A stretch of DNA of 64,000 bases, from the IMG/VR virus record IMGVR_UViG_3300048008_000449, positions 1-64,000 of that record; one strand, 5' to 3'. Shown in pieces: positions 37,184 to 55,709 of the stretch. The notes under the pieces are model-generated. The model had not been told where the DNA came from, did no database searches, and worked only from the letters and a program-made list of their open reading frames with translations. The translations under genes were made by a program, and so were the position numbers. Numbering within the stretch: the stretch's first letter is position 1; each line of letters opens with the position of its first letter.

Positions 37184-37528
37184 TTAATCTCCTTCTCCTG
37201 GTTTTTCAGATAGTAATTCACGTTTGTTTGGTTTATCTTTCCATTCTGCAGCATCTGCAGGTGGATCTTTCATTGTAGTTATGTTTGGCCATTTTTCAGA
37301 CATATCGGTATTGACTTTCATCCAATAGGCTAGTTCTGTGCCTTCGATAGCACCATCAGCAACAATTGCATCTACTGGACATTCGGGTTCACATACACCA
37401 CAGTCAATACATTCATCTGGATTTATTACTAGAAAGTTTTCACCTTCATAGAAACAATCAACAGGACAAACTTCAACGCAGTCAGTATGTTTACATTTAA
37501 TACAATTTTCTGTTACTAAATATGTCAT
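37184..37528 (-). CDS. fdxA: 7Fe (3Fe-4S/4Fe-4S) ferredoxin, FdxA type
   Basis: [38 protein letters not shown]. Confidence 0.95.
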
Positions 37529-37825
37529 TTATACTCCTAAAATTAATCTTGTATCTTCGCTCATTTTATCTGGTCCAAAAGGCGGATCAAATGTTATTTT
37601 AACATCGCATGTTTCGACGTTATCTACTTTTGTTACTGCTTCGTGGACTTCCGCTATGATCTCGTCTGCGGCAGGACAGAACGCACTAGTTAATGTCATA
37701 ACAATATCAACGTGTGCTTTATTAATATTTATTTCATAAATTAAACCCAAATCATATACGTTTATACTGATCTCTGGGTCATATACTACTTTTAAATTTT
37801 CAATAATCTTTTCTTTATCTATCAT
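37529..37825 (-). CDS. DUF59 / SufT-like Fe-S cluster assembly protein
   Basis: VYDPEISINVYDLGLIY, MTLTSAFCP, TFDPP..P; start set at ATG 37825. Confidence 0.9.
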   Translation of the reverse strand: MIDKEKIIENLKVVYDPEISINVYDLGLIYEININKAHVDIVMTLTSAFCPAADEIIAEVHEAVTKVDNVETCDVKITFDPPFGPDKMSEDTRLILGV

Positions 37826-38802
37826 ATATTTTCTATTAGTGGTTTTATTCTTTTCTTTAATTGTTTCGCCCATAACACATGGCCTTTTTCATTAAGGTGA
37901 TTACATTTACATTGATGCGACATAGATATTGGTCCATCAACTTGTAGCCATCCTCCTTCATCGGATGTTCCATCAAGACAATTAAGTCGTTCTCTTATTG
38001 ATTGATCAAAGTTAATAAGGTGATCAAATAATGTACTAGTATCACCTAGCATCATTTTTCCAATCTTGTACCAAATACTTCTAGCATCAAGTGATTCCCA
38101 TAAAAATTCTACACCAGAACTGACAGCTATGTTTTTAATAGCTTCTATCTTTATCAGATCATCTAAACAAGCCGCTGGCCCCATTCCATCAAGTATGTGT
38201 ACTTGTTTATAAGTGTCTAATATTTTTTTAGCATATGCTATCTCACTAGGAGTTAATGGATGCTCTAAAGGTTGCCAAAACTTCTTTGTTACACCTCTTC
38301 TCCAATCCTGCATACTAGCAGATTGATATAATGCATTGCATATATCATTATCACCCCAATGATCAACTAGACCTCTGCCCCAACGTTCATTTAGTTGTAA
38401 ATAAGATTCCAATGAAGCTCTACCAAATTGATTATTACTACCTGTTTTTGGGTCAGTAAATACATAAGGTCTATTAGCAACAGAATTATAAGGTACTGCA
38501 CTTTGTCCATTAAGAAGTCTAGCTTCTAATACCATTAATTTACAGTTTGGATCTTTAAGTACACCTCTAGTAACCAACTCGTTTGTTGCTTGTAATAGTT
38601 CTGAGTTATTACACCCAGGTAAACCTATCTTAATACATTCTAATCCTAGTTGTTGAGCTACCTGTTCGTGAGCAGTTTTTCCACTTATTACGCCGTCCTC
38701 ATAATCGTCACAACATCCAAAAGTGTGACTAGTACCTAATGCTACCATAAACGGCTTATTAGGTACTACCAAAGGTGGTTTATTGTCTAGCTTTCTACTC
38801 AT
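37822..38802 (-). CDS. SGNH-hydrolase-like protein
   Basis: ALGTSHTFG, GLPGCNN, CNHLNEKGH. Confidence 0.6.
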   Translation of the reverse strand: MSRKLDNKPPLVVPNKPFMVALGTSHTFGCCDDYEDGVISGKTAHEQVAQQLGLECIKIGLPGCNNSELLQATNELVTRGVLKDPNCKLMVLEARLLNGQSAVPYNSVANRPYVFTDPKTGSNNQFGRASLESYLQLNERWGRGLVDHWGDNDICNALYQSASMQDWRRGVTKKFWQPLEHPLTPSEIAYAKKILDTYKQVHILDGMGPAACLDDLIKIEAIKNIAVSSGVEFLWESLDARSIWYKIGKMMLGDTSTLFDHLINFDQSIRERLNCLDGTSDEGGWLQVDGPISMSHQCKCNHLNEKGHVLWAKQLKKRIKPLIENI

Positions 38803-39257
38803 TATTGAGAACTTGGTGAGTAGATAGCACTGTTTGCACCATGCTCACTACACTCTGCTGATTCACACCAGCAACGATCATCACTCATTTCTCGTATAAG
38901 TTTATCTGCAAATGCCCATGCATGTTCTGCAAACTTTTCTGCACCAACTCCGTCAAACAATCTAATTTCTGCTAAGTTCATAGCATCAAGTTCTTTGAAC
39001 TTCTCAAGATGGGGATCGTTTTTGTCTAAGCATAATTTATGATCAAAATGATCTTCAAGCCATGCTTTCAAAGGTTTTAATCCTCCAAAGTCAACTGCCC
39101 AGTTTTTATTATCTAATTCACTGCATCCAAATGTAAATTTAAATGCTAATGAATAGCCATGAATCAAACTACAATGTGAATGATCAGCATGTGGTTGACG
39201 AAATACTGCACTTAGTCCAATATTATGTCCGTATGTTTTTGTGCTTAAATAAGCCAT
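38802..39257 (-). CDS. queD: 6-carboxy-5,6,7,8-tetrahydropterin synthase / 6-pyruvoyl-tetrahydropterin synthase (QueD-like)
   Basis: HSHCSLIHGY, VDFGGLK.LK.WL...FDH, E..ANSA. Confidence 0.85.
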   Translation of the reverse strand: MAYLSTKTYGHNIGLSAVFRQPHADHSHCSLIHGYSLAFKFTFGCSELDNKNWAVDFGGLKPLKAWLEDHFDHKLCLDKNDPHLEKFKELDAMNLAEIRLFDGVGAEKFAEHAWAFADKLIREMSDDRCWCESAECSEHGANSAIYSPSSQ

Positions 39258-39280
39258 ATCTTATCTCCTATATAATATCA

Positions 39281-39320
39281 GCGGCAGAATGTTTTGAGAG
39301 GGTTGACGCCTAAGACCTCA
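39281..39320 (-). ncRNA. Candidate preQ1-I-like riboswitch aptamer in the queD leader
   Basis: UGAGG-UCUUAGGCGUCAAC-CCUC-U-CAAAACAUUCUGCCGC: short P1 stem, loop starting UC and ending AAC, A-rich 3' tail, possible GGCG/UGCC pseudoknot; recognised by eye only. Confidence 0.45.
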
Positions 39321-39326
39321 TTTATG

Positions 39327-39533
39327 TTATGCGTTTTTTAAGTTAATAGCTGATAAACCTTTAGGTGTTTCAGCAACTTCAAAAACAAGTTCATCACCTT
39401 CATTAAGACTGTTAAGTCCTGATGCTGTTATAGCTGATGAATGCACGAATACGTCTTTTTCGCTATCGTGTCTAGTAATGAATCCGTAGCCTTTAGTAGC
39501 ATTGAACCATTTTACTTTTCCTGTTATAGTCAT
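39327..39533 (-). CDS. cspA: Cold-shock protein
   Basis: [24 protein letters not shown] (RNP1/RNP2). Confidence 0.95.
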
Positions 39534-39563
39534 ATTATCCTTTATTTGTTATTTAAGTACATG

Positions 39564-40313
39564 TTACACTAGTTCTGTAGTTTTGTCAAGAGCATATCTA
39601 ATGTGTTGCCTAACTACTTTTGCTGGTGTTGCATCTCGTTTATGCAATACTTTGTGATTATTATATACCAACAGTTGTTTTGGAGCCCAATTATGAGAAT
39701 ACATGTGTTGTTCTTTGTATATCTCTTTTTGTAATTGCGGTTCTAACTCTGTTTCCGTATATGCTTCGCTGTAAAAGTAATATGGGCCATAATCATCTTC
39801 CCATACTAAATCATGTGTCGCTCTATTAAACCTTCTCCAGGCTCTTTCTTGTAACTTACTTTTAAAATTATAAGGATACTCTTCCTGACTCATGTACTTC
39901 GTAATACTGTTGACGCATTTTACGCCTTTTGCTTGTTCTTTTAAACTGTCACTGCTATCTTTATATACGCCTTGCATATCTAAGTAGTGTGTTTGACTAG
40001 ATCCCTTGTCAGCACGTATACAATACAATCCAACAAATGGATGTATTGAATCGCTGTAAGCTCTATCTTGGTGCCAAAGCATATCTGTTGCATGATTTAG
40101 CTTTTCACCTTTTTCATCTTCAATACCAATTGTAACTTTTTTACGACCATACATATCTTGATCTAAAAGTTTACCAAACTTGTCAATGGTTTGTTCATCA
40201 GCACCTTCAATACATATGATACCATATGCACCATTTTGAAAATCATTAACTAAAGTAGGAGTTATATCATCTACTTTTATGTTATGTAAGAATTTATATT
40301 TTTCTATAGTCAT
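39564..40313 (-). CDS. TauD/TfdA-family 2OG-dependent dioxygenase
   Basis: LWHQDRAY (HxD), H.W..K.L..YNN.KVLHKR. Confidence 0.82.
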   Translation of the reverse strand: MTIEKYKFLHNIKVDDITPTLVNDFQNGAYGIICIEGADEQTIDKFGKLLDQDMYGRKKVTIGIEDEKGEKLNHATDMLWHQDRAYSDSIHPFVGLYCIRADKGSSQTHYLDMQGVYKDSSDSLKEQAKGVKCVNSITKYMSQEEYPYNFKSKLQERAWRRFNRATHDLVWEDDYGPYYFYSEAYTETELEPQLQKEIYKEQHMYSHNWAPKQLLVYNNHKVLHKRDATPAKVVRQHIRYALDKTTELV

Positions 40314-40857
40314 TTGTTAACGGATTCTCTCCTCTCCATATTATATGTTGCCAGCATTCGTCACCATCACATGGTGCAGTTTGCCATTCATAATCTTCTA
40401 GTACCCAATCTTTGTACTTACAATTATAATTTAATCCTTTATGTAGATTACGCATCACTTTAAAATTTCCATGTTCTCTACTTATAAAGTGTTTGGTTAA
40501 GCCTTGAGATATTGCATAATCTACTTGTTGATCTGCATGTTCTGCGGTAAATGTACTTAGCCCTTTTACATGGTACTTATGAATACGTAGTCCTTTTTGT
40601 GCTACATTAAGTTTTTTACTTGTATAATATCTACTTAATACTCTAACACCGTTATTATAAAAATCTCTCGTTCTTGCTACACTACCTGCAATTGGATCGC
40701 CCTCATCATCCCATGTTACACTGTAACATAAATTTTCTTCACTGCTTAAACTTTCTATCTCATAATTATGAGGCATTCTATTCAATGAATCTTTTAATGA
40801 TTCTTCAAATAATGTAATAAGTTCTAGAGGGATCCAATCAGTAGTTTCTGTATGCAT
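40294..40857 (-). CDS. GNAT-like acyltransferase-fold protein
   Basis: PIAGSV..NGVRVLSRYY pattern; weak. Confidence 0.4.
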   Translation of the reverse strand: MHTETTDWIPLELITLFEESLKDSLNRMPHNYEIESLSSEENLCYSVTWDDEGDPIAGSVARTRDFYNNGVRVLSRYYTSKKLNVAQKGLRIHKYHVKGLSTFTAEHADQQVDYAISQGLTKHFISREHGNFKVMRNLHKGLNYNCKYKDWVLEDYEWQTAPCDGDECWQHIIWRGENPLTNDYRKI

Positions 40858-41798
40858 TATTCTTCTTTAAGAAATTTATAATTAAACGCAATACGATAAA
40901 GTAATCTATCACCTTTGACTGCATTACGTGCATGGTAACTCATAAACTGATCGTTAATAATTAAGTCACCTTCTTTCCAATGATGATGGTACATATACTG
41001 TGGTTGAAATAGATGTTTATGCAATGCATCCAATAATGGTTTTGCTTCTTGCAATGTAATTTCTTCACCAGTTTCTTTATTACGTAATTTACGCATTACA
41101 CCAAAGTGTCCTGTATAAATTGCTTTAGGACTATTGTCCTGATCCCACCAGCCTGGTATTGTTCTAAATGGATGTTGTACAATTAATGGTTTCCAACTAC
41201 CACGTACAGGATTAAGTTCGTTTTTACCTTTACGTCCTGTGCTTTTTAAATTACCTTCAAATATAGCAAGTAATTCATCCATGCCTTTGTTTAAACTGTC
41301 GTCATCAAATTGGTATATGCTATTGTCTTTATCAAACTGTGCCCAATATTCAAAATTATCAGCAGTATCTTTTAGCTCTTGTGGTAAGTCTTCGTATGCT
41401 TGCTTGCTGTTTAGATAACTTGTAACAACTTGTTCACCTGGACGAACACAATAGAAAGCAATACAACTTTCAATAACATGTTTCCAATGACGCCAGTTGC
41501 CGTTGTTGTGCCAACCTAATTCGCTTTCAGGAAATAATCCAACAAACTTTCCATCTTTGTCTTTTTCATTTGTAACACGGCTAATACCTGGATAATCTTT
41601 GTGTTCAAAGTAAACATCAAATCCTGCTTTCTTTGGACTATATAGTTTTCCAATGCTAGTAGCACCATCTAATAATTCTTGTTCGTGTAAATTAGCACCT
41701 GGTATATACGCAATAACATCTTTTGGTTGATTACGGCATACTTCATGCCAGTTATTTGGATCTCTCATATCCAAATTGTATTCTACGGGTTTAAACAT
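40857..41798 (-). CDS. TauD/TfdA-family 2OG-dependent dioxygenase
   Basis: ELGWHNNG, HHWKEGDLIINDQFMSYHARN..GDRLLYRI. Confidence 0.85.
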   Translation of the reverse strand: MFKPVEYNLDMRDPNNWHEVCRNQPKDVIAYIPGANLHEQELLDGATSIGKLYSPKKAGFDVYFEHKDYPGISRVTNEKDKDGKFVGLFPESELGWHNNGNWRHWKHVIESCIAFYCVRPGEQVVTSYLNSKQAYEDLPQELKDTADNFEYWAQFDKDNSIYQFDDDSLNKGMDELLAIFEGNLKSTGRKGKNELNPVRGSWKPLIVQHPFRTIPGWWDQDNSPKAIYTGHFGVMRKLRNKETGEEITLQEAKPLLDALHKHLFQPQYMYHHHWKEGDLIINDQFMSYHARNAVKGDRLLYRIAFNYKFLKEE

Positions 41799-41800
41799 TT

Positions 41801-42523
41801 TTACCTCTTTATTAATTTAATAAACCAAGCACCTGGGTCCCATTGCCACAGTGTCTTGCCGATACGCCAGTTTCTAGAATCTTCGTGATGGTTTTTATGC
41901 CATCCTTCTCCAGCGGTTAATATATTTGCAACCCAACTATTTTTAGGGTTACCATTTTCTGTGTGTGGGATTAAATTTACAAGTCCATATCCATGGAATG
42001 CAAATACTACTGGCATACAAAATCCAAATAAAAATAACATAGGATTTATGAACAACAATAATATTGCTATTAGTGTTATTAGTAAAAAATAGTTATCATG
42101 GAAGAATTTTGTATCCGGAGTAATTAATCCTTTAATCATTTTTCTTTCTATAGTAACATCGTTGCCCCATTGACTAGTATATACCTTAAAGAAACCTTTA
42201 AGTGTTGGACTATGTGGGTCTTTGTTAGTGTCAGTATAAGCATGGTGCATTCTATGTGTGCTAGCCCATGTTAATACAGGACCAGGATTTGCGAACATTC
42301 CTAGTACCTGTACATAATATCTATACCAATTTGGTGCTTCAAACGATCCATGACTAAAGTATCTATGATACCCTGCACTGATTGCTGAAGCGGCAATAAA
42401 TTGCCACCAAATGAAACTTAAGATTAGCATCCAAAGTTCACCATATATAAATGCTGGTATGAGCATTAAGTGGCAGATTGCATGTATTGAAAGAAGTTTA
42501 TGTGTTGTTGATATCTTCTTCAT
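41801..42523 (-). CDS. Membrane fatty acid desaturase (delta-9 acyl-CoA/acyl-lipid type)
   Basis: His boxes HRYFSH, HRMHH and GEGWHKNHH; DPHSP; WDP. Confidence 0.93.
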   Translation of the reverse strand: MKKISTTHKLLSIHAICHLMLIPAFIYGELWMLILSFIWWQFIAASAISAGYHRYFSHGSFEAPNWYRYYVQVLGMFANPGPVLTWASTHRMHHAYTDTNKDPHSPTLKGFFKVYTSQWGNDVTIERKMIKGLITPDTKFFHDNYFLLITLIAILLLFINPMLFLFGFCMPVVFAFHGYGLVNLIPHTENGNPKNSWVANILTAGEGWHKNHHEDSRNWRIGKTLWQWDPGAWFIKLIKR

Positions 42524-54408: not shown

Positions 54409-55709
54409 TCAGGGCTAATCCAATATTTTTCTAATTGTGGTATGTATTTAAGTATACTTGTTTTTCTGTGTTTGTCAAGTAATTCTGTTGTCTTACAGAA
54501 GAATTTCCAATTGTCTTTATCTTCTTCTGTGTAAGGTTTTTTAAGTAAATGTACTACTCCTCTCAGAACATGGTCTTTTGCATCATCCCATCTAGTGAAA
54601 CATTGTTCTTCAATCCAACTTGCTAGCCATAATCTATATTCTATATCTGGGTGTACTTGTAAACAAAGATAAATTGGAGCAACAAGAGCGGCATTAAAAC
54701 CAGTAAGATCATTTAACTTACTTTTCCCATGATGTTCGTGTTCCCATAACCATTCAATATAAGGTTTGATATTATACATATTAAGTAACTGTGGAGTGTA
54801 AGAAAGACCCATATGGAATATTTTACTACAGTCAAGTATTCTTTGTTGAATCATTTCACCTTTGTATTTTCCAATAGTTCCAACTGCTGGTCTTATATAT
54901 TCATATACATCACCAATAGCATCTAAACTTACTACAAGTCTAGTATTAAGTTTTTTTAATTTTTCAGTTTTTTCTTCATCAAGCAAAGTTAAGTTTGTTA
55001 CAATTTTTAAATCACCTTCGTAACCATGTTCAACTAACTTATCTACCATATGCCAAAACTCTGGTTGAAAAAACGGTTCACCACCACTACATTCAATTAG
55101 TTTACATTCAAGAAATGTTTCTAGATTCTCGTCAACAACACGAGCTGGAACTACGTATTGTTTTTGTTCCATTCTTGTTCCTGCTACTGCTCTATCAACT
55201 TCTTGTATACTATCCATATTTTTTAACAAATAGTTAACATCTTTGTACCAACCTGTGCTACGTTTTGGACTACACATAGTACATCTAAGATTACATGCAT
55301 TACTAAAATCTATTGAAAATTTATTAATACCTTCGTAATGTCTTGGCTTTCTAGGGTCATTCCATTCATGCTGTGAGCCAAATCTATGACTCCATCCTGA
55401 TTTGTTTTCTGATTTTTGACAACGTCCACATCCGTCAGGCCATACGTTTTCTTTTGTATTAGCCCTTACTTCTGCTGACTGTGAATTAAAAAAGAAATCT
55501 CTTGCGTTAATATCTTTTATATTTCCAAATAAACCTTTTCTATATTGACAACAGAATCCGTAATCACCAAAGTTATCAACATGTACTTCGTTATGAGGAG
55601 CAACACAATAAGTATTATTAAGGTCAGCTTTCCAATGAACCAAAGAATCATCTGGTACATTCTCATAAGGCATTATCATTCTATTTCTTGGCTTATTATC
55701 TTTTTTCAA
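54405..55709 (-). CDS. Radical SAM protein with N-terminal SPASM/Twitch-like domain, outside the main cluster
   Basis: YCVAPHNE..FCC..CGRC; CNLRCTMC; SGGEPF; VTN; SLD..YEYIR. Confidence 0.92.
   Translation of the reverse strand: MKKDNKPRNRMIMPYENVPDDSLVHWKADLNNTYCVAPHNEVHVDNFGDYGFCCQYRKGLFGNIKDINARDFFFNSQSAEVRANTKENVWPDGCGRCQKSENKSGWSHRFGSQHEWNDPRKPRHYEGINKFSIDFSNACNLRCTMCSPKRSTGWYKDVNYLLKNMDSIQEVDRAVAGTRMEQKQYVVPARVVDENLETFLECKLIECSGGEPFFQPEFWHMVDKLVEHGYEGDLKIVTNLTLLDEEKTEKLKKLNTRLVVSLDAIGDVYEYIRPAVGTIGKYKGEMIQQRILDCSKIFHMGLSYTPQLLNMYNIKPYIEWLWEHEHHGKSKLNDLTGFNAALVAPIYLCLQVHPDIEYRLWLASWIEEQCFTRWDDAKDHVLRGVVHLLKKPYTEEDKDNWKFFCKTTELLDKHRKTSILKYIPQLEKYWISPE

Follow-up and report, generated by a model that had tools for sequence, protein, structure and literature searches.

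Does the short leader that separates a cold-shock gene from a queD-like gene in a marine phage carry a riboswitch, and if so, does it belong to the preQ1-I class? The question arises on a stretch of 64,000 nucleotides (hereafter, the window), positions 1 to 64,000 of the 204,772-base IMG/VR virus record IMGVR_UViG_3300048008_000449, where a reading made from the sequence alone had proposed a preQ1-I-like element with a longer loop, giving feedback control of a phage deazapurine or pterin pathway, possibly with altered ligand specificity. The analysis shows that the leader is one copy of a strongly conserved RNA pseudoknot of about 45 nt, found almost only in phages and, wherever a downstream ORF could be read, in front of queD-family genes. 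It looks like an undescribed riboswitch related in shape to preQ1-I but is not a recognizable member of that family.

The leader between cspA and queD

The minus strand of 39320-39255 reads UGAGG UCUUAGGCGUCAAC CCUC U CAAAACA UUCUGCCGCU GAUAUUAUAU AGGAG AUAAGAU AUG, and the part given in the sequence-only reading (39320-39281) is exactly as quoted there, so that its observation is confirmed. The spacer between the two genes is 69 nt long. The 22-mer GAGGUCUUAGGCGUCAACCCUC is unique in the window even with 3 mismatches allowed, 0 matches being expected. The statement that CAAAACA occurs in the T. tengcongensis preQ1-I aptamer is correct, as judged by the sequence printed in PMC10639078. The second helix, which makes the element a pseudoknot, had not been seen in that reading. 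The features of the region are collected in Table 1.

Taken as a single sequence, the leader is unremarkable: the MFE is -9 kcal/mol, no better than in shuffles (z = +1.5), and the predicted fold does not even contain the P1 stem. The evidence that it is more than chance comes entirely from comparison with other copies. A search with the Rfam preQ1 covariance models, put forward in advance as a check, failed. No Rfam 15 family reaches its gathering score anywhere in the window, and nothing hits the site at E<=10 when 1 kb or the 91-nt leader is searched, nor is there any hit at E<=10 in 20 diverse copies. The PreQ1 model RF00522 (gathering threshold 39 bits), run alone over the whole virus record at E<=10, lists nine chance matches of 8.6-15.2 bits, none of them at the site. 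By this criterion the finding would have been dropped. A blastn comparison of the region and of two other copies with cultured phages likewise gave only chance hits.

Table 1. Features of the cspA-queD region, in coordinates of the window.
Position	Strand	Feature	Observations
39561..39589	-	Sigma-70-like promoter (TTGACA-17-TAACAT) upstream of cspA; likely start of a cspA-leader-queD transcript	Consensus scan, 10 of 12 matches; metatranscriptome contigs identical or close to the window end at 39544 and 39570, and no RNA contig covers 39584-39624 in four runs; suggestive only
39327..39533	-	CspA/CspE-family cold-shock gene directly upstream of the motif	Pfam CSD E 2.3e-24; NCBIfam CspE/CspA models E 1e-24
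39277..39321	-	Whole conserved RNA motif (H-type pseudoknot)	Covariance model R1, built from 115 versions: 50.2 bits, E 1.4e-9; single hit in the 204,772-base record
39316..39319	-	P1 5' strand, GAGG	In most other copies a fifth A-U pair is added; here U39320 faces U39297. Alignment A1 pairs 3-29, 4-28, 5-27 and 6-26; types seen GC/AU/UA, AU/UA/CG and GC/CG; no unpaired cells
39311..39315	-	L1, UCUUA	First base never G in any copy (column 7: A82/U24/C9/G0); C39314 invariant (column 8: C in 115 of 115); U39313 nearly invariant (column 9: U in 100 of 101)
39304..39310	-	P2 5' strand, GGCG-U-CA; U39306 is the conserved mismatch	A1 pairs 17-47 to 20-44, 22-42 and 23-41; pair 23-41, the junction pair of P2, is AU 70, GC 44, unpaired 1; pairs 18-46 and 19-45 show 5-6 pair types with 2-3 unpaired cells of 115; highest mutual information in the alignment
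39302..39303	-	L2; C39302 is an invariant unpaired C immediately 5' of the P1 3' strand, the position of the specificity cytosine in preQ1-I (PMC11625349)	Column 25: C in 115 of 115, and in 37 of 37 of the protein-anchored set; A39303 variable but never G (column 24: A50/U42/C23/G0)
39298..39301	-	P1 3' strand, CCUC	As for the P1 5' strand
39287..39297	-	L3, UCAAAACAUUC; A-rich tail ending in the invariant A-N-U-C	Columns 33-35: A in at least 108 of 109; A37, U39 and C40 invariant in both A1 and A3; a shorter 7-nt form of L3 exists in other phages
39280..39286	-	P2 3' strand, UG-C-CGCU (the switching segment); C39284 faces U39306	A natural variant in RNA contigs and in L010 (one of the collected copies) changes G39310 to A, turning G.U39280 into A-U
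39253..39282	-	Alternative hairpin; 39282-39274 pairs with 39260-39253, which includes the AUG; Shine-Dalgarno sequence in the loop; shares G39282, C39281 and U39280 with P2	Weak in this copy; part of the MFE fold; duplex test not significant (z = +0.24); the equivalent helix is clear in other copies
39265..39269	-	Shine-Dalgarno sequence AGGAG	10 nt after P2 and 7 nt before the AUG at 39257-39255; across 115 copies the spacer from P2 is 3-26 nt, median 10
38802..39257	-	PTPS/QueD-family gene (151 aa) with C-x3-HGY in place of C-x3-HGH	PF01242 E 1e-13; TIGR03367 QueD 34 bits, below its cut-off; aligns to the solved QueD 7v0f with HGY against HGH
37822..38802	-	326-aa ORF whose start overlaps the queD stop by one base; probably co-regulated with queD	No Pfam or NCBIfam match; no known family

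A conserved H-type pseudoknot

A search of IMG/VR with the QueD-like protein gave the 80 closest loci, 78-100% identical, and in 68 of them the sequence just upstream of the gene is a version of the same motif. The differences between versions are compensatory. P1 is GAGG/CCUC, GUGG/CCAC, GACG/CGUC, GCGG/CCGC, AAGG/CCUU or UAGG/CCUA, while the 3' part of the loop (N4-7, then U, C, R) pairs with the tail (Y, G, C, then N4-7), as in GGCG-U-CA/UG-C-CGCU in the window, GACUU-U-CA/UG-C-AAGUC, AGGG-A-U-CG/CG-C-C-CCCU and GUGU-U-CG/CG-C-ACAC. The element is therefore an H-type pseudoknot, with P1 of 4-5 bp and P2 of 6-9 bp holding a conserved U.C mismatch.

Covariation among homologous leaders, the other comparative test proposed beforehand, is strong. 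In a MAFFT alignment of 115 distinct versions from IMG/VR phage contigs (A1), scored for P1 (5 pairs) plus P2 (9 pairs), 89.1% of cells are paired against 67.3% after shuffling partners, and the covariation score is 0.507 against 0.144, a value reached by none of 500 shuffles; registers slid by 1-3 columns give 33-58% paired. P1 pair 4-28 is AU in 80 sequences, UA in 34 and CG in one, with none unpaired, and the column pairs with the highest mutual information are the proposed base pairs. Two thirds of these sequences were retrieved with a DNA pattern that fixes some of the "invariant" columns by construction, and the count was therefore repeated on the 37 distinct versions obtained through the protein alone (A3), with the same result (89.2% against 67.1%, and 0.496 against 0.143, 0 of 500 shuffles). 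The invariant positions are also the same, namely the top G-C pair of P1, C in L1, U and C-G in P2, the unpaired C before the P1 3' strand, and A-N-U-C at the end of L3. Since the sequences are related by descent, the shuffle statistics overstate independence and are not probabilities, but the number of independent pair types and the slid-register controls do not depend on that. A search for tertiary covariation between loop columns and the junction pair revealed nothing convincing. An attempt to pair the conserved CAAACUU(A/G)CU segment with the conserved SD-spacer of one subgroup, by inspection of the sequences, gave no consistent helix.

Distribution and gene association

A gene-blind pattern taken from the conserved core (TCRNCCNNCTNNAAAYAYTCYGC) was scanned over IMG/VR and found at least 120 viral stretches. 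Of the first 120, 114 also have a P1, the R-Y pair and at least 3 further P2 pairs, and each of these with a readable downstream ORF precedes a PTPS/QueD-family protein 27-81% identical to that of the window; with the protein-anchored loci included, identity runs from 27% to 100%. The set includes canonical C-x3-HGH QueD types, several C-x3-HGY subfamilies and a 306-aa form. The identical pattern, scanned over one genome for each of 185,579 prokaryote species, also gave at least 120 hits, but only 1 of the first 120 passes the structural test, and it lies on a 5.5 kb contig of a "Bacteroidetes" bin that looks like phage. The covariance model built on A1 finds one copy per locus in 913,626 bases of 100 motif-bearing loci and nothing elsewhere in them. 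It finds nothing in the 12 close QueD loci that lack the motif, nor in four cultured-phage QueD loci, which have no leader. Neither a metagenome scan nor a further protein homology search was made.

In 56 of 112 distinct upstream contexts, a near-consensus TTGACA-N16-18-TATAAT promoter scoring at least 10 of 12 ends 5-20 nt before P1, against 1 of 109 control windows, and there the RNA begins at or just before the pseudoknot. In the window there is no such promoter, and the motif, which lies just after the cspA stop codon, is probably transcribed together with cspA. Marine metatranscriptome contigs span queD, the leader and cspA and stop at 39544-39570, although contigs cannot prove a single transcript and this is only suggestive.

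The queD-like gene and its pathway

The closest cultured relatives of the window's protein are at most 53% identical and are phage QueD genes sitting inside queE/queC/folE/dpdA clusters, which make 7-deazaguanine DNA modifications (PMC10516641; this paper does not mention riboswitches). In the motif-bearing contigs, a queE of the type found in Synechococcus phage BUCT-ZZ01 follows queD in about 23 loci, a phosphoribosyltransferase gene occurs in 12-15 loci and folE in 6, while no queC or dpdA was seen within the short flanks examined. In the 204 kb of the window's own phage (CheckV completeness 56%), no folE, queC, tgt/dpdA, BUCT-ZZ01-type queE or phosphoribosyltransferase gene was found, and a 240-aa radical SAM ORF is not a clear QueE (36 bits against a cut-off of 260). 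The window's enzyme has HGY where solved QueD has HGH, so that its exact reaction is open. Structure prediction was not used.

A possible expression platform

The start codon lies 14-38 nt after P2, and the Shine-Dalgarno sequence is so close behind P2 that no room is left for a terminator. In many copies, the P2 3' strand and the few bases after it are complementary to the initiation region: AAGUCAUC with GAUGACUU, UGCCAUC with GAUGGCA, UGUCAUA with UAUGACA, UGUCAUU with AAUGGCA, and ACUCC or CCUC with the Shine-Dalgarno sequence. Across 115 copies, this complementarity exceeds that to shuffled initiation regions (mean z of -1.15, with 69 copies below -1 and 3 above +1). In a subset of 49 sequences, the helix GUCAUC/GAUGRC is 88% paired and shows compensatory changes at the -1 position (CG 43, UA 3, AU 1) and at codon 2; this subset was chosen after the fact for containing CAU, and only its flanking pairs are informative.

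The strand cannot be in P2 and in the alternative helix at once, which suggests a translational ON switch. However, a general anti-SD function of the aptamer is not supported: masking the aptamer raises SD accessibility from 0.47 to 0.65, but shuffled aptamers pair with the ribosome-binding site even more than the native one (0.36 against 0.24). With a clear alternative helix in many copies, a weak one in the window and no support from the shuffled-aptamer control, the observations do not settle whether mutually exclusive pairing operates here. In any case, an ON switch before a biosynthetic gene is unusual.

Interpretation

The leader is best explained as a phage-specific, cis-acting RNA that serves as the aptamer of an undescribed riboswitch class controlling translation of queD-family genes, a reading held with moderate confidence, slightly better than even. 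What the comparison itself demonstrates is the two helices P1 and P2, the invariant unpaired bases (C39314, C39302, A39290, U39288, C39287 and the U39306.C39284 mismatch), the strict position in front of queD-family genes, and the location at the very 5' end of the transcript in about half of the contexts. The rest is inference. A small ligand with a guanine-like face would bind at the P1/P2 junction opposite the invariant C, sandwiched between the helices, as preQ1 does in preQ1-I, and the absence of G at both positions flanking the junction fits such a pocket, because a G there could fill it. The ligand would be a 7-deazapurine of the queD/queE pathway such as preQ1, preQ0, CDG or 7-deazaguanine, or else a pterin or GTP-derived precursor, but it is a guess; there are no binding or expression data, and neither ligand binding nor its selectivity, including selectivity for preQ1, was assayed. 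Binding would lock P2 and free the ribosome-binding site. Against this reading stand the weak single-sequence fold and the lack of significant anti-start complementarity in the window's own copy, and the absence of folE, queC, tgt/dpdA or a clear queE from the 204 kb of this phage that were examined. Two generic marks of a riboswitch are present, a conserved, covarying structure with invariant unpaired bases and a consistent cis position in the leaders of genes of one pathway across divergent genes and contexts.

The interpretation offered by the sequence-only reading is thus partly supported. It is right in kind, for the element is riboswitch-like, with an inferred preQ1-I-like pocket, and is linked to a 7-deazapurine or pterin pathway, with the P1 stem, the C before the P1 3' strand and the A-rich tail which that reading had named. 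It is wrong in detail, for the element is not simply a preQ1-I aptamer with a longer loop, and it is probably not a feedback OFF switch. The identity of the ligand, including the altered specificity which that reading allowed for, was not tested.

Among the alternatives, a true but very divergent preQ1-I riboswitch, binding preQ1 or preQ0 through the conserved C and repressing queD as ordinary end-product feedback, seems unlikely. It would account for the fold type, for the invariant C preceded by A or U in 80% of copies, for the A-rich L3, for the string CCCUCUAUAAA shared letter for letter between many phage copies and the B. subtilis aptamer (PMC10639078), and for the association with 7-deazaguanine pathway genes, but it is opposed by the failed model searches, by the differences in architecture given below and by the alternative pairing, which predicts ON, not OFF. 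A ligand-independent leader pseudoknot, either a binding site for a phage or host protein or a fixed element that sets translation efficiency or mRNA stability of queD, is also doubtful, though slightly less so. Pseudoknots at the 5' end of leaders with regulatory protein partners exist in T4-like phages, the motif often begins at the first bases of the transcript, its invariant loop bases could be tertiary or protein contacts rather than a ligand pocket, and the expression platform is weak in some copies, including that of the window. On the other hand, the motif travels with queD-family genes across subfamilies only 27-45% identical to each other and across unrelated upstream contexts and promoters, which fits a self-contained sensor tied to the pathway better than a partner protein that would have to be present in all these phages; no candidate protein partner is conserved beside it, and the position of the invariant C and the lack of G at the flanking positions fit a pocket for a G-like ligand. 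A chance hairpin or an intrinsic terminator of cspA, which the unstable single-sequence fold and the position just after cspA might suggest, is already refuted by compensatory changes in two helices and by the promoter-proximal copies; moreover, P1 is only 4 bp and is followed by UCAAAACA rather than a U tract, and no terminator was called at the site.

A more far-reaching version of the favored reading is possible but tentative. According to it, this is a new riboswitch class confined to uncultured, mostly marine phages, which senses a guanine-faced intermediate of the phage 7-deazaguanine DNA-modification pathway, or its pterin or GTP-derived precursor, and switches queD translation ON by pulling an anti-start strand into a pseudoknot; it would be a phage-borne metabolite sensor that times DNA hypermodification. 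Few riboswitches are known that belong to phages rather than to their hosts. The element is abundant in marine viromes, its comparative support is of the kind used to nominate riboswitch candidates, and it is tied to the pathway that phages use to replace guanine in their DNA with 7-deazaguanines and so evade restriction. No description of the motif was found in Rfam 15 or in full-text literature searches, which does not exclude a description elsewhere. If it binds a pathway metabolite, it would show how phages regulate DNA hypermodification, and it would add a compact new aptamer, possibly for CDG, 7-deazaguanine or a pterin, which no known riboswitch senses, demonstrating either divergence from preQ1-I or convergence on the same pocket design.

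Comparison with known systems

The marks of the preQ1-I family (RF00522, types I-III) are an H-type pseudoknot, a specificity C preceded by U (type I) or A (types II and III), U or UU above the P1 5' strand, an A-rich tail, and a Shine-Dalgarno sequence partly or wholly in P2, or a terminator (PMC11625349). The phage motif shares the fold type, a P1 of about 5 bp that is often AGAGG/CCUCU as in B. subtilis, the unpaired invariant C (preceded by A in 43% of copies, U in 37% and C in 20%, CC not being a described type), an A-rich L3 beginning (A/U)UAAA, and the location in front of 7-deazaguanine pathway genes. It differs in having no covariance-model match and a length of 39-50 nt instead of about 34. 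Its P2 lies at the 3' end of the loop rather than in the 5' half, is two to three times longer than the 3-4 bp of preQ1-I, and abuts the C, with an L2 of 1 nt instead of 3-6 nt. L1, short in preQ1-I, is 3-12 nt long and starts H-C-U instead of U/UU, so that the lengths of L1 and L2 are the reverse of those in preQ1-I; L3 is 11 nt (7 nt in a subtype) instead of about 6-8 nt and ends in its own invariant A-N-U-C. The Shine-Dalgarno sequence is outside P2, the predicted logic is ON, and the motif occurs in phage contigs and was essentially absent from the cellular genomes sampled. It is therefore not filed as a member of preQ1-I, although a pocket of the same design remains the most economical reading.

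The preQ1-II (RF01054) and preQ1-III (RF02680) riboswitches are likewise pseudoknotted sensors of a 7-deazaguanine linked to queuosine genes, and class III keeps its expression platform apart from the pocket (PMC11625349), but both are HLout pseudoknots of about 60-100 nt upstream of queT transporters, and neither gave a covariance-model match. Other H-type pseudoknot riboswitches (SAM-II, SAM-V, guanidine-III, NAD+-II, fluoride) are small classical pseudoknots in which loop bases line the grooves and the ligand stabilizes the second helix; their conserved sequences and gene associations differ, and none of their Rfam models matches. In translational ON riboswitches such as the Vibrio vulnificus add adenine riboswitch, one aptamer strand can pair either within the aptamer or with the initiation region, so that ligand binding frees the start site, but they have a three-way junction fold, a different ligand pocket and bacterial hosts. 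Finally, the T4 gene 32 mRNA leader pseudoknot is also an H-type pseudoknot at the 5' end of a phage mRNA leader that regulates translation; it is, however, bound by its own gene product, a single-strand-binding protein, and no such logic is apparent for a T-fold enzyme.

Variants of the Leader Motif

The second IMG/VR contig L009 (IMGVR_UViG_3300046750_000365, 79,713 b) is identical to the window over cspA, the leader, and queD, while L010 represents a close strain with the substitution G39310A, which turns a G.U pair of P2 into A-U, and with a change in the variable part of L3. Among the other motif-bearing IMG/VR loci (designated L with a number), L021, L040, L041, L060, L064, L066, L077, and L079 form a subtype in which L3 comprises 7 nt (CUAAUUC) instead of 11 nt, and P1 is AAGG/CCUU or UAGG/CCUA. 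In some of them, CCCAUA after P2 is complementary to UAUGGG at the start codon. The variant copy in L090 bears an insertion of about 11 nt (ACUUGAGGGUG) between the YG-C and the distal P2 3′ strand (GCCUU), and the covariance model matches only its core (27 bits).

One subgroup (L100, L104, L110, L111, L161, and about 30 more loci) is distinguished by the region between P2 and the start codon, having a conserved CAUCAAACUU(A/G)CU(A/C) after P2 and a conserved GGAG(A/G)C(A/U)AGAGAUGGC around the start. The two blocks change together between clades, but no consistent pairing was found between them.

In four marine metatranscriptome runs, no contig covers 39584-39624, and contigs identical or close to the window end at 39544 and 39570, just downstream of a promoter-like site. 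The DNA itself is found in seawater metagenomes of many studies.

Genes of the Virus Record and of the Motif-Bearing Loci

The virus record (G000) holds 19 Pfam Radical_SAM matches, 17 of them over the cut-off. Most of these are ORFs of 350-445 aa with a SPASM/twitch domain placed N-terminal to the radical SAM core, and one matches NCBIfam N_Twi_rSAM at 317 bits. Twelve lie in one plus-strand block, together with an aminotransferase-like ORF. This is an extraordinary load of radical SAM paralogs for a phage. Around the queD gene lie an Fe-S assembly protein (PF01883), a 7Fe-type ferredoxin with DUF3470, two TauD-family 2OG/Fe(II) dioxygenases, and a membrane ORF with desaturase-like histidine boxes, which may be an Fe-S and redox support set for the radical SAM enzymes.

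Coordinates of the features in the window, in the virus record, and in locus L090
Feature	Sequence	Position	Strand
Radical SAM ORFs	window	1059-24629	+
Radical SAM ORFs	window	54891-55307	-
Radical SAM ORFs	G000	65617-97577	
Fe-S and redox genes around queD	window	37184-37873	-
Fe-S and redox genes around queD	window	39564-42523	-
QueD-like protein gene with C-x3-HGY	window	38802-39257	-
Region of metatranscriptome contig ends and of no contig coverage	window	39544-39624	
Promoter-like site	window	39589-39561	
Variant copy with insertion (and flanks)	L090	7482-7504	-

The contigs L092, L098, L105, L125, L142, L154, L182, and others carry, along with the motif, queD with queE, a phosphoribosyltransferase gene, and sometimes folE, while no queC or dpdA was detected within the flanks fetched. 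This is the gene set of phages that stop at CDG or 7-deazaguanine. The QueD-like proteins behind the motif, in the window and in most motif-bearing loci, have C-x3-HGY where canonical QueD has C-x3-HGH, a zinc ligand, and only a few (L196, L201) keep HGH. All score below the NCBIfam QueD cut-off. The activity of these enzymes should not be assumed, since a QueD paralog (DpdL) with a different reaction has been described (PMC10516641).
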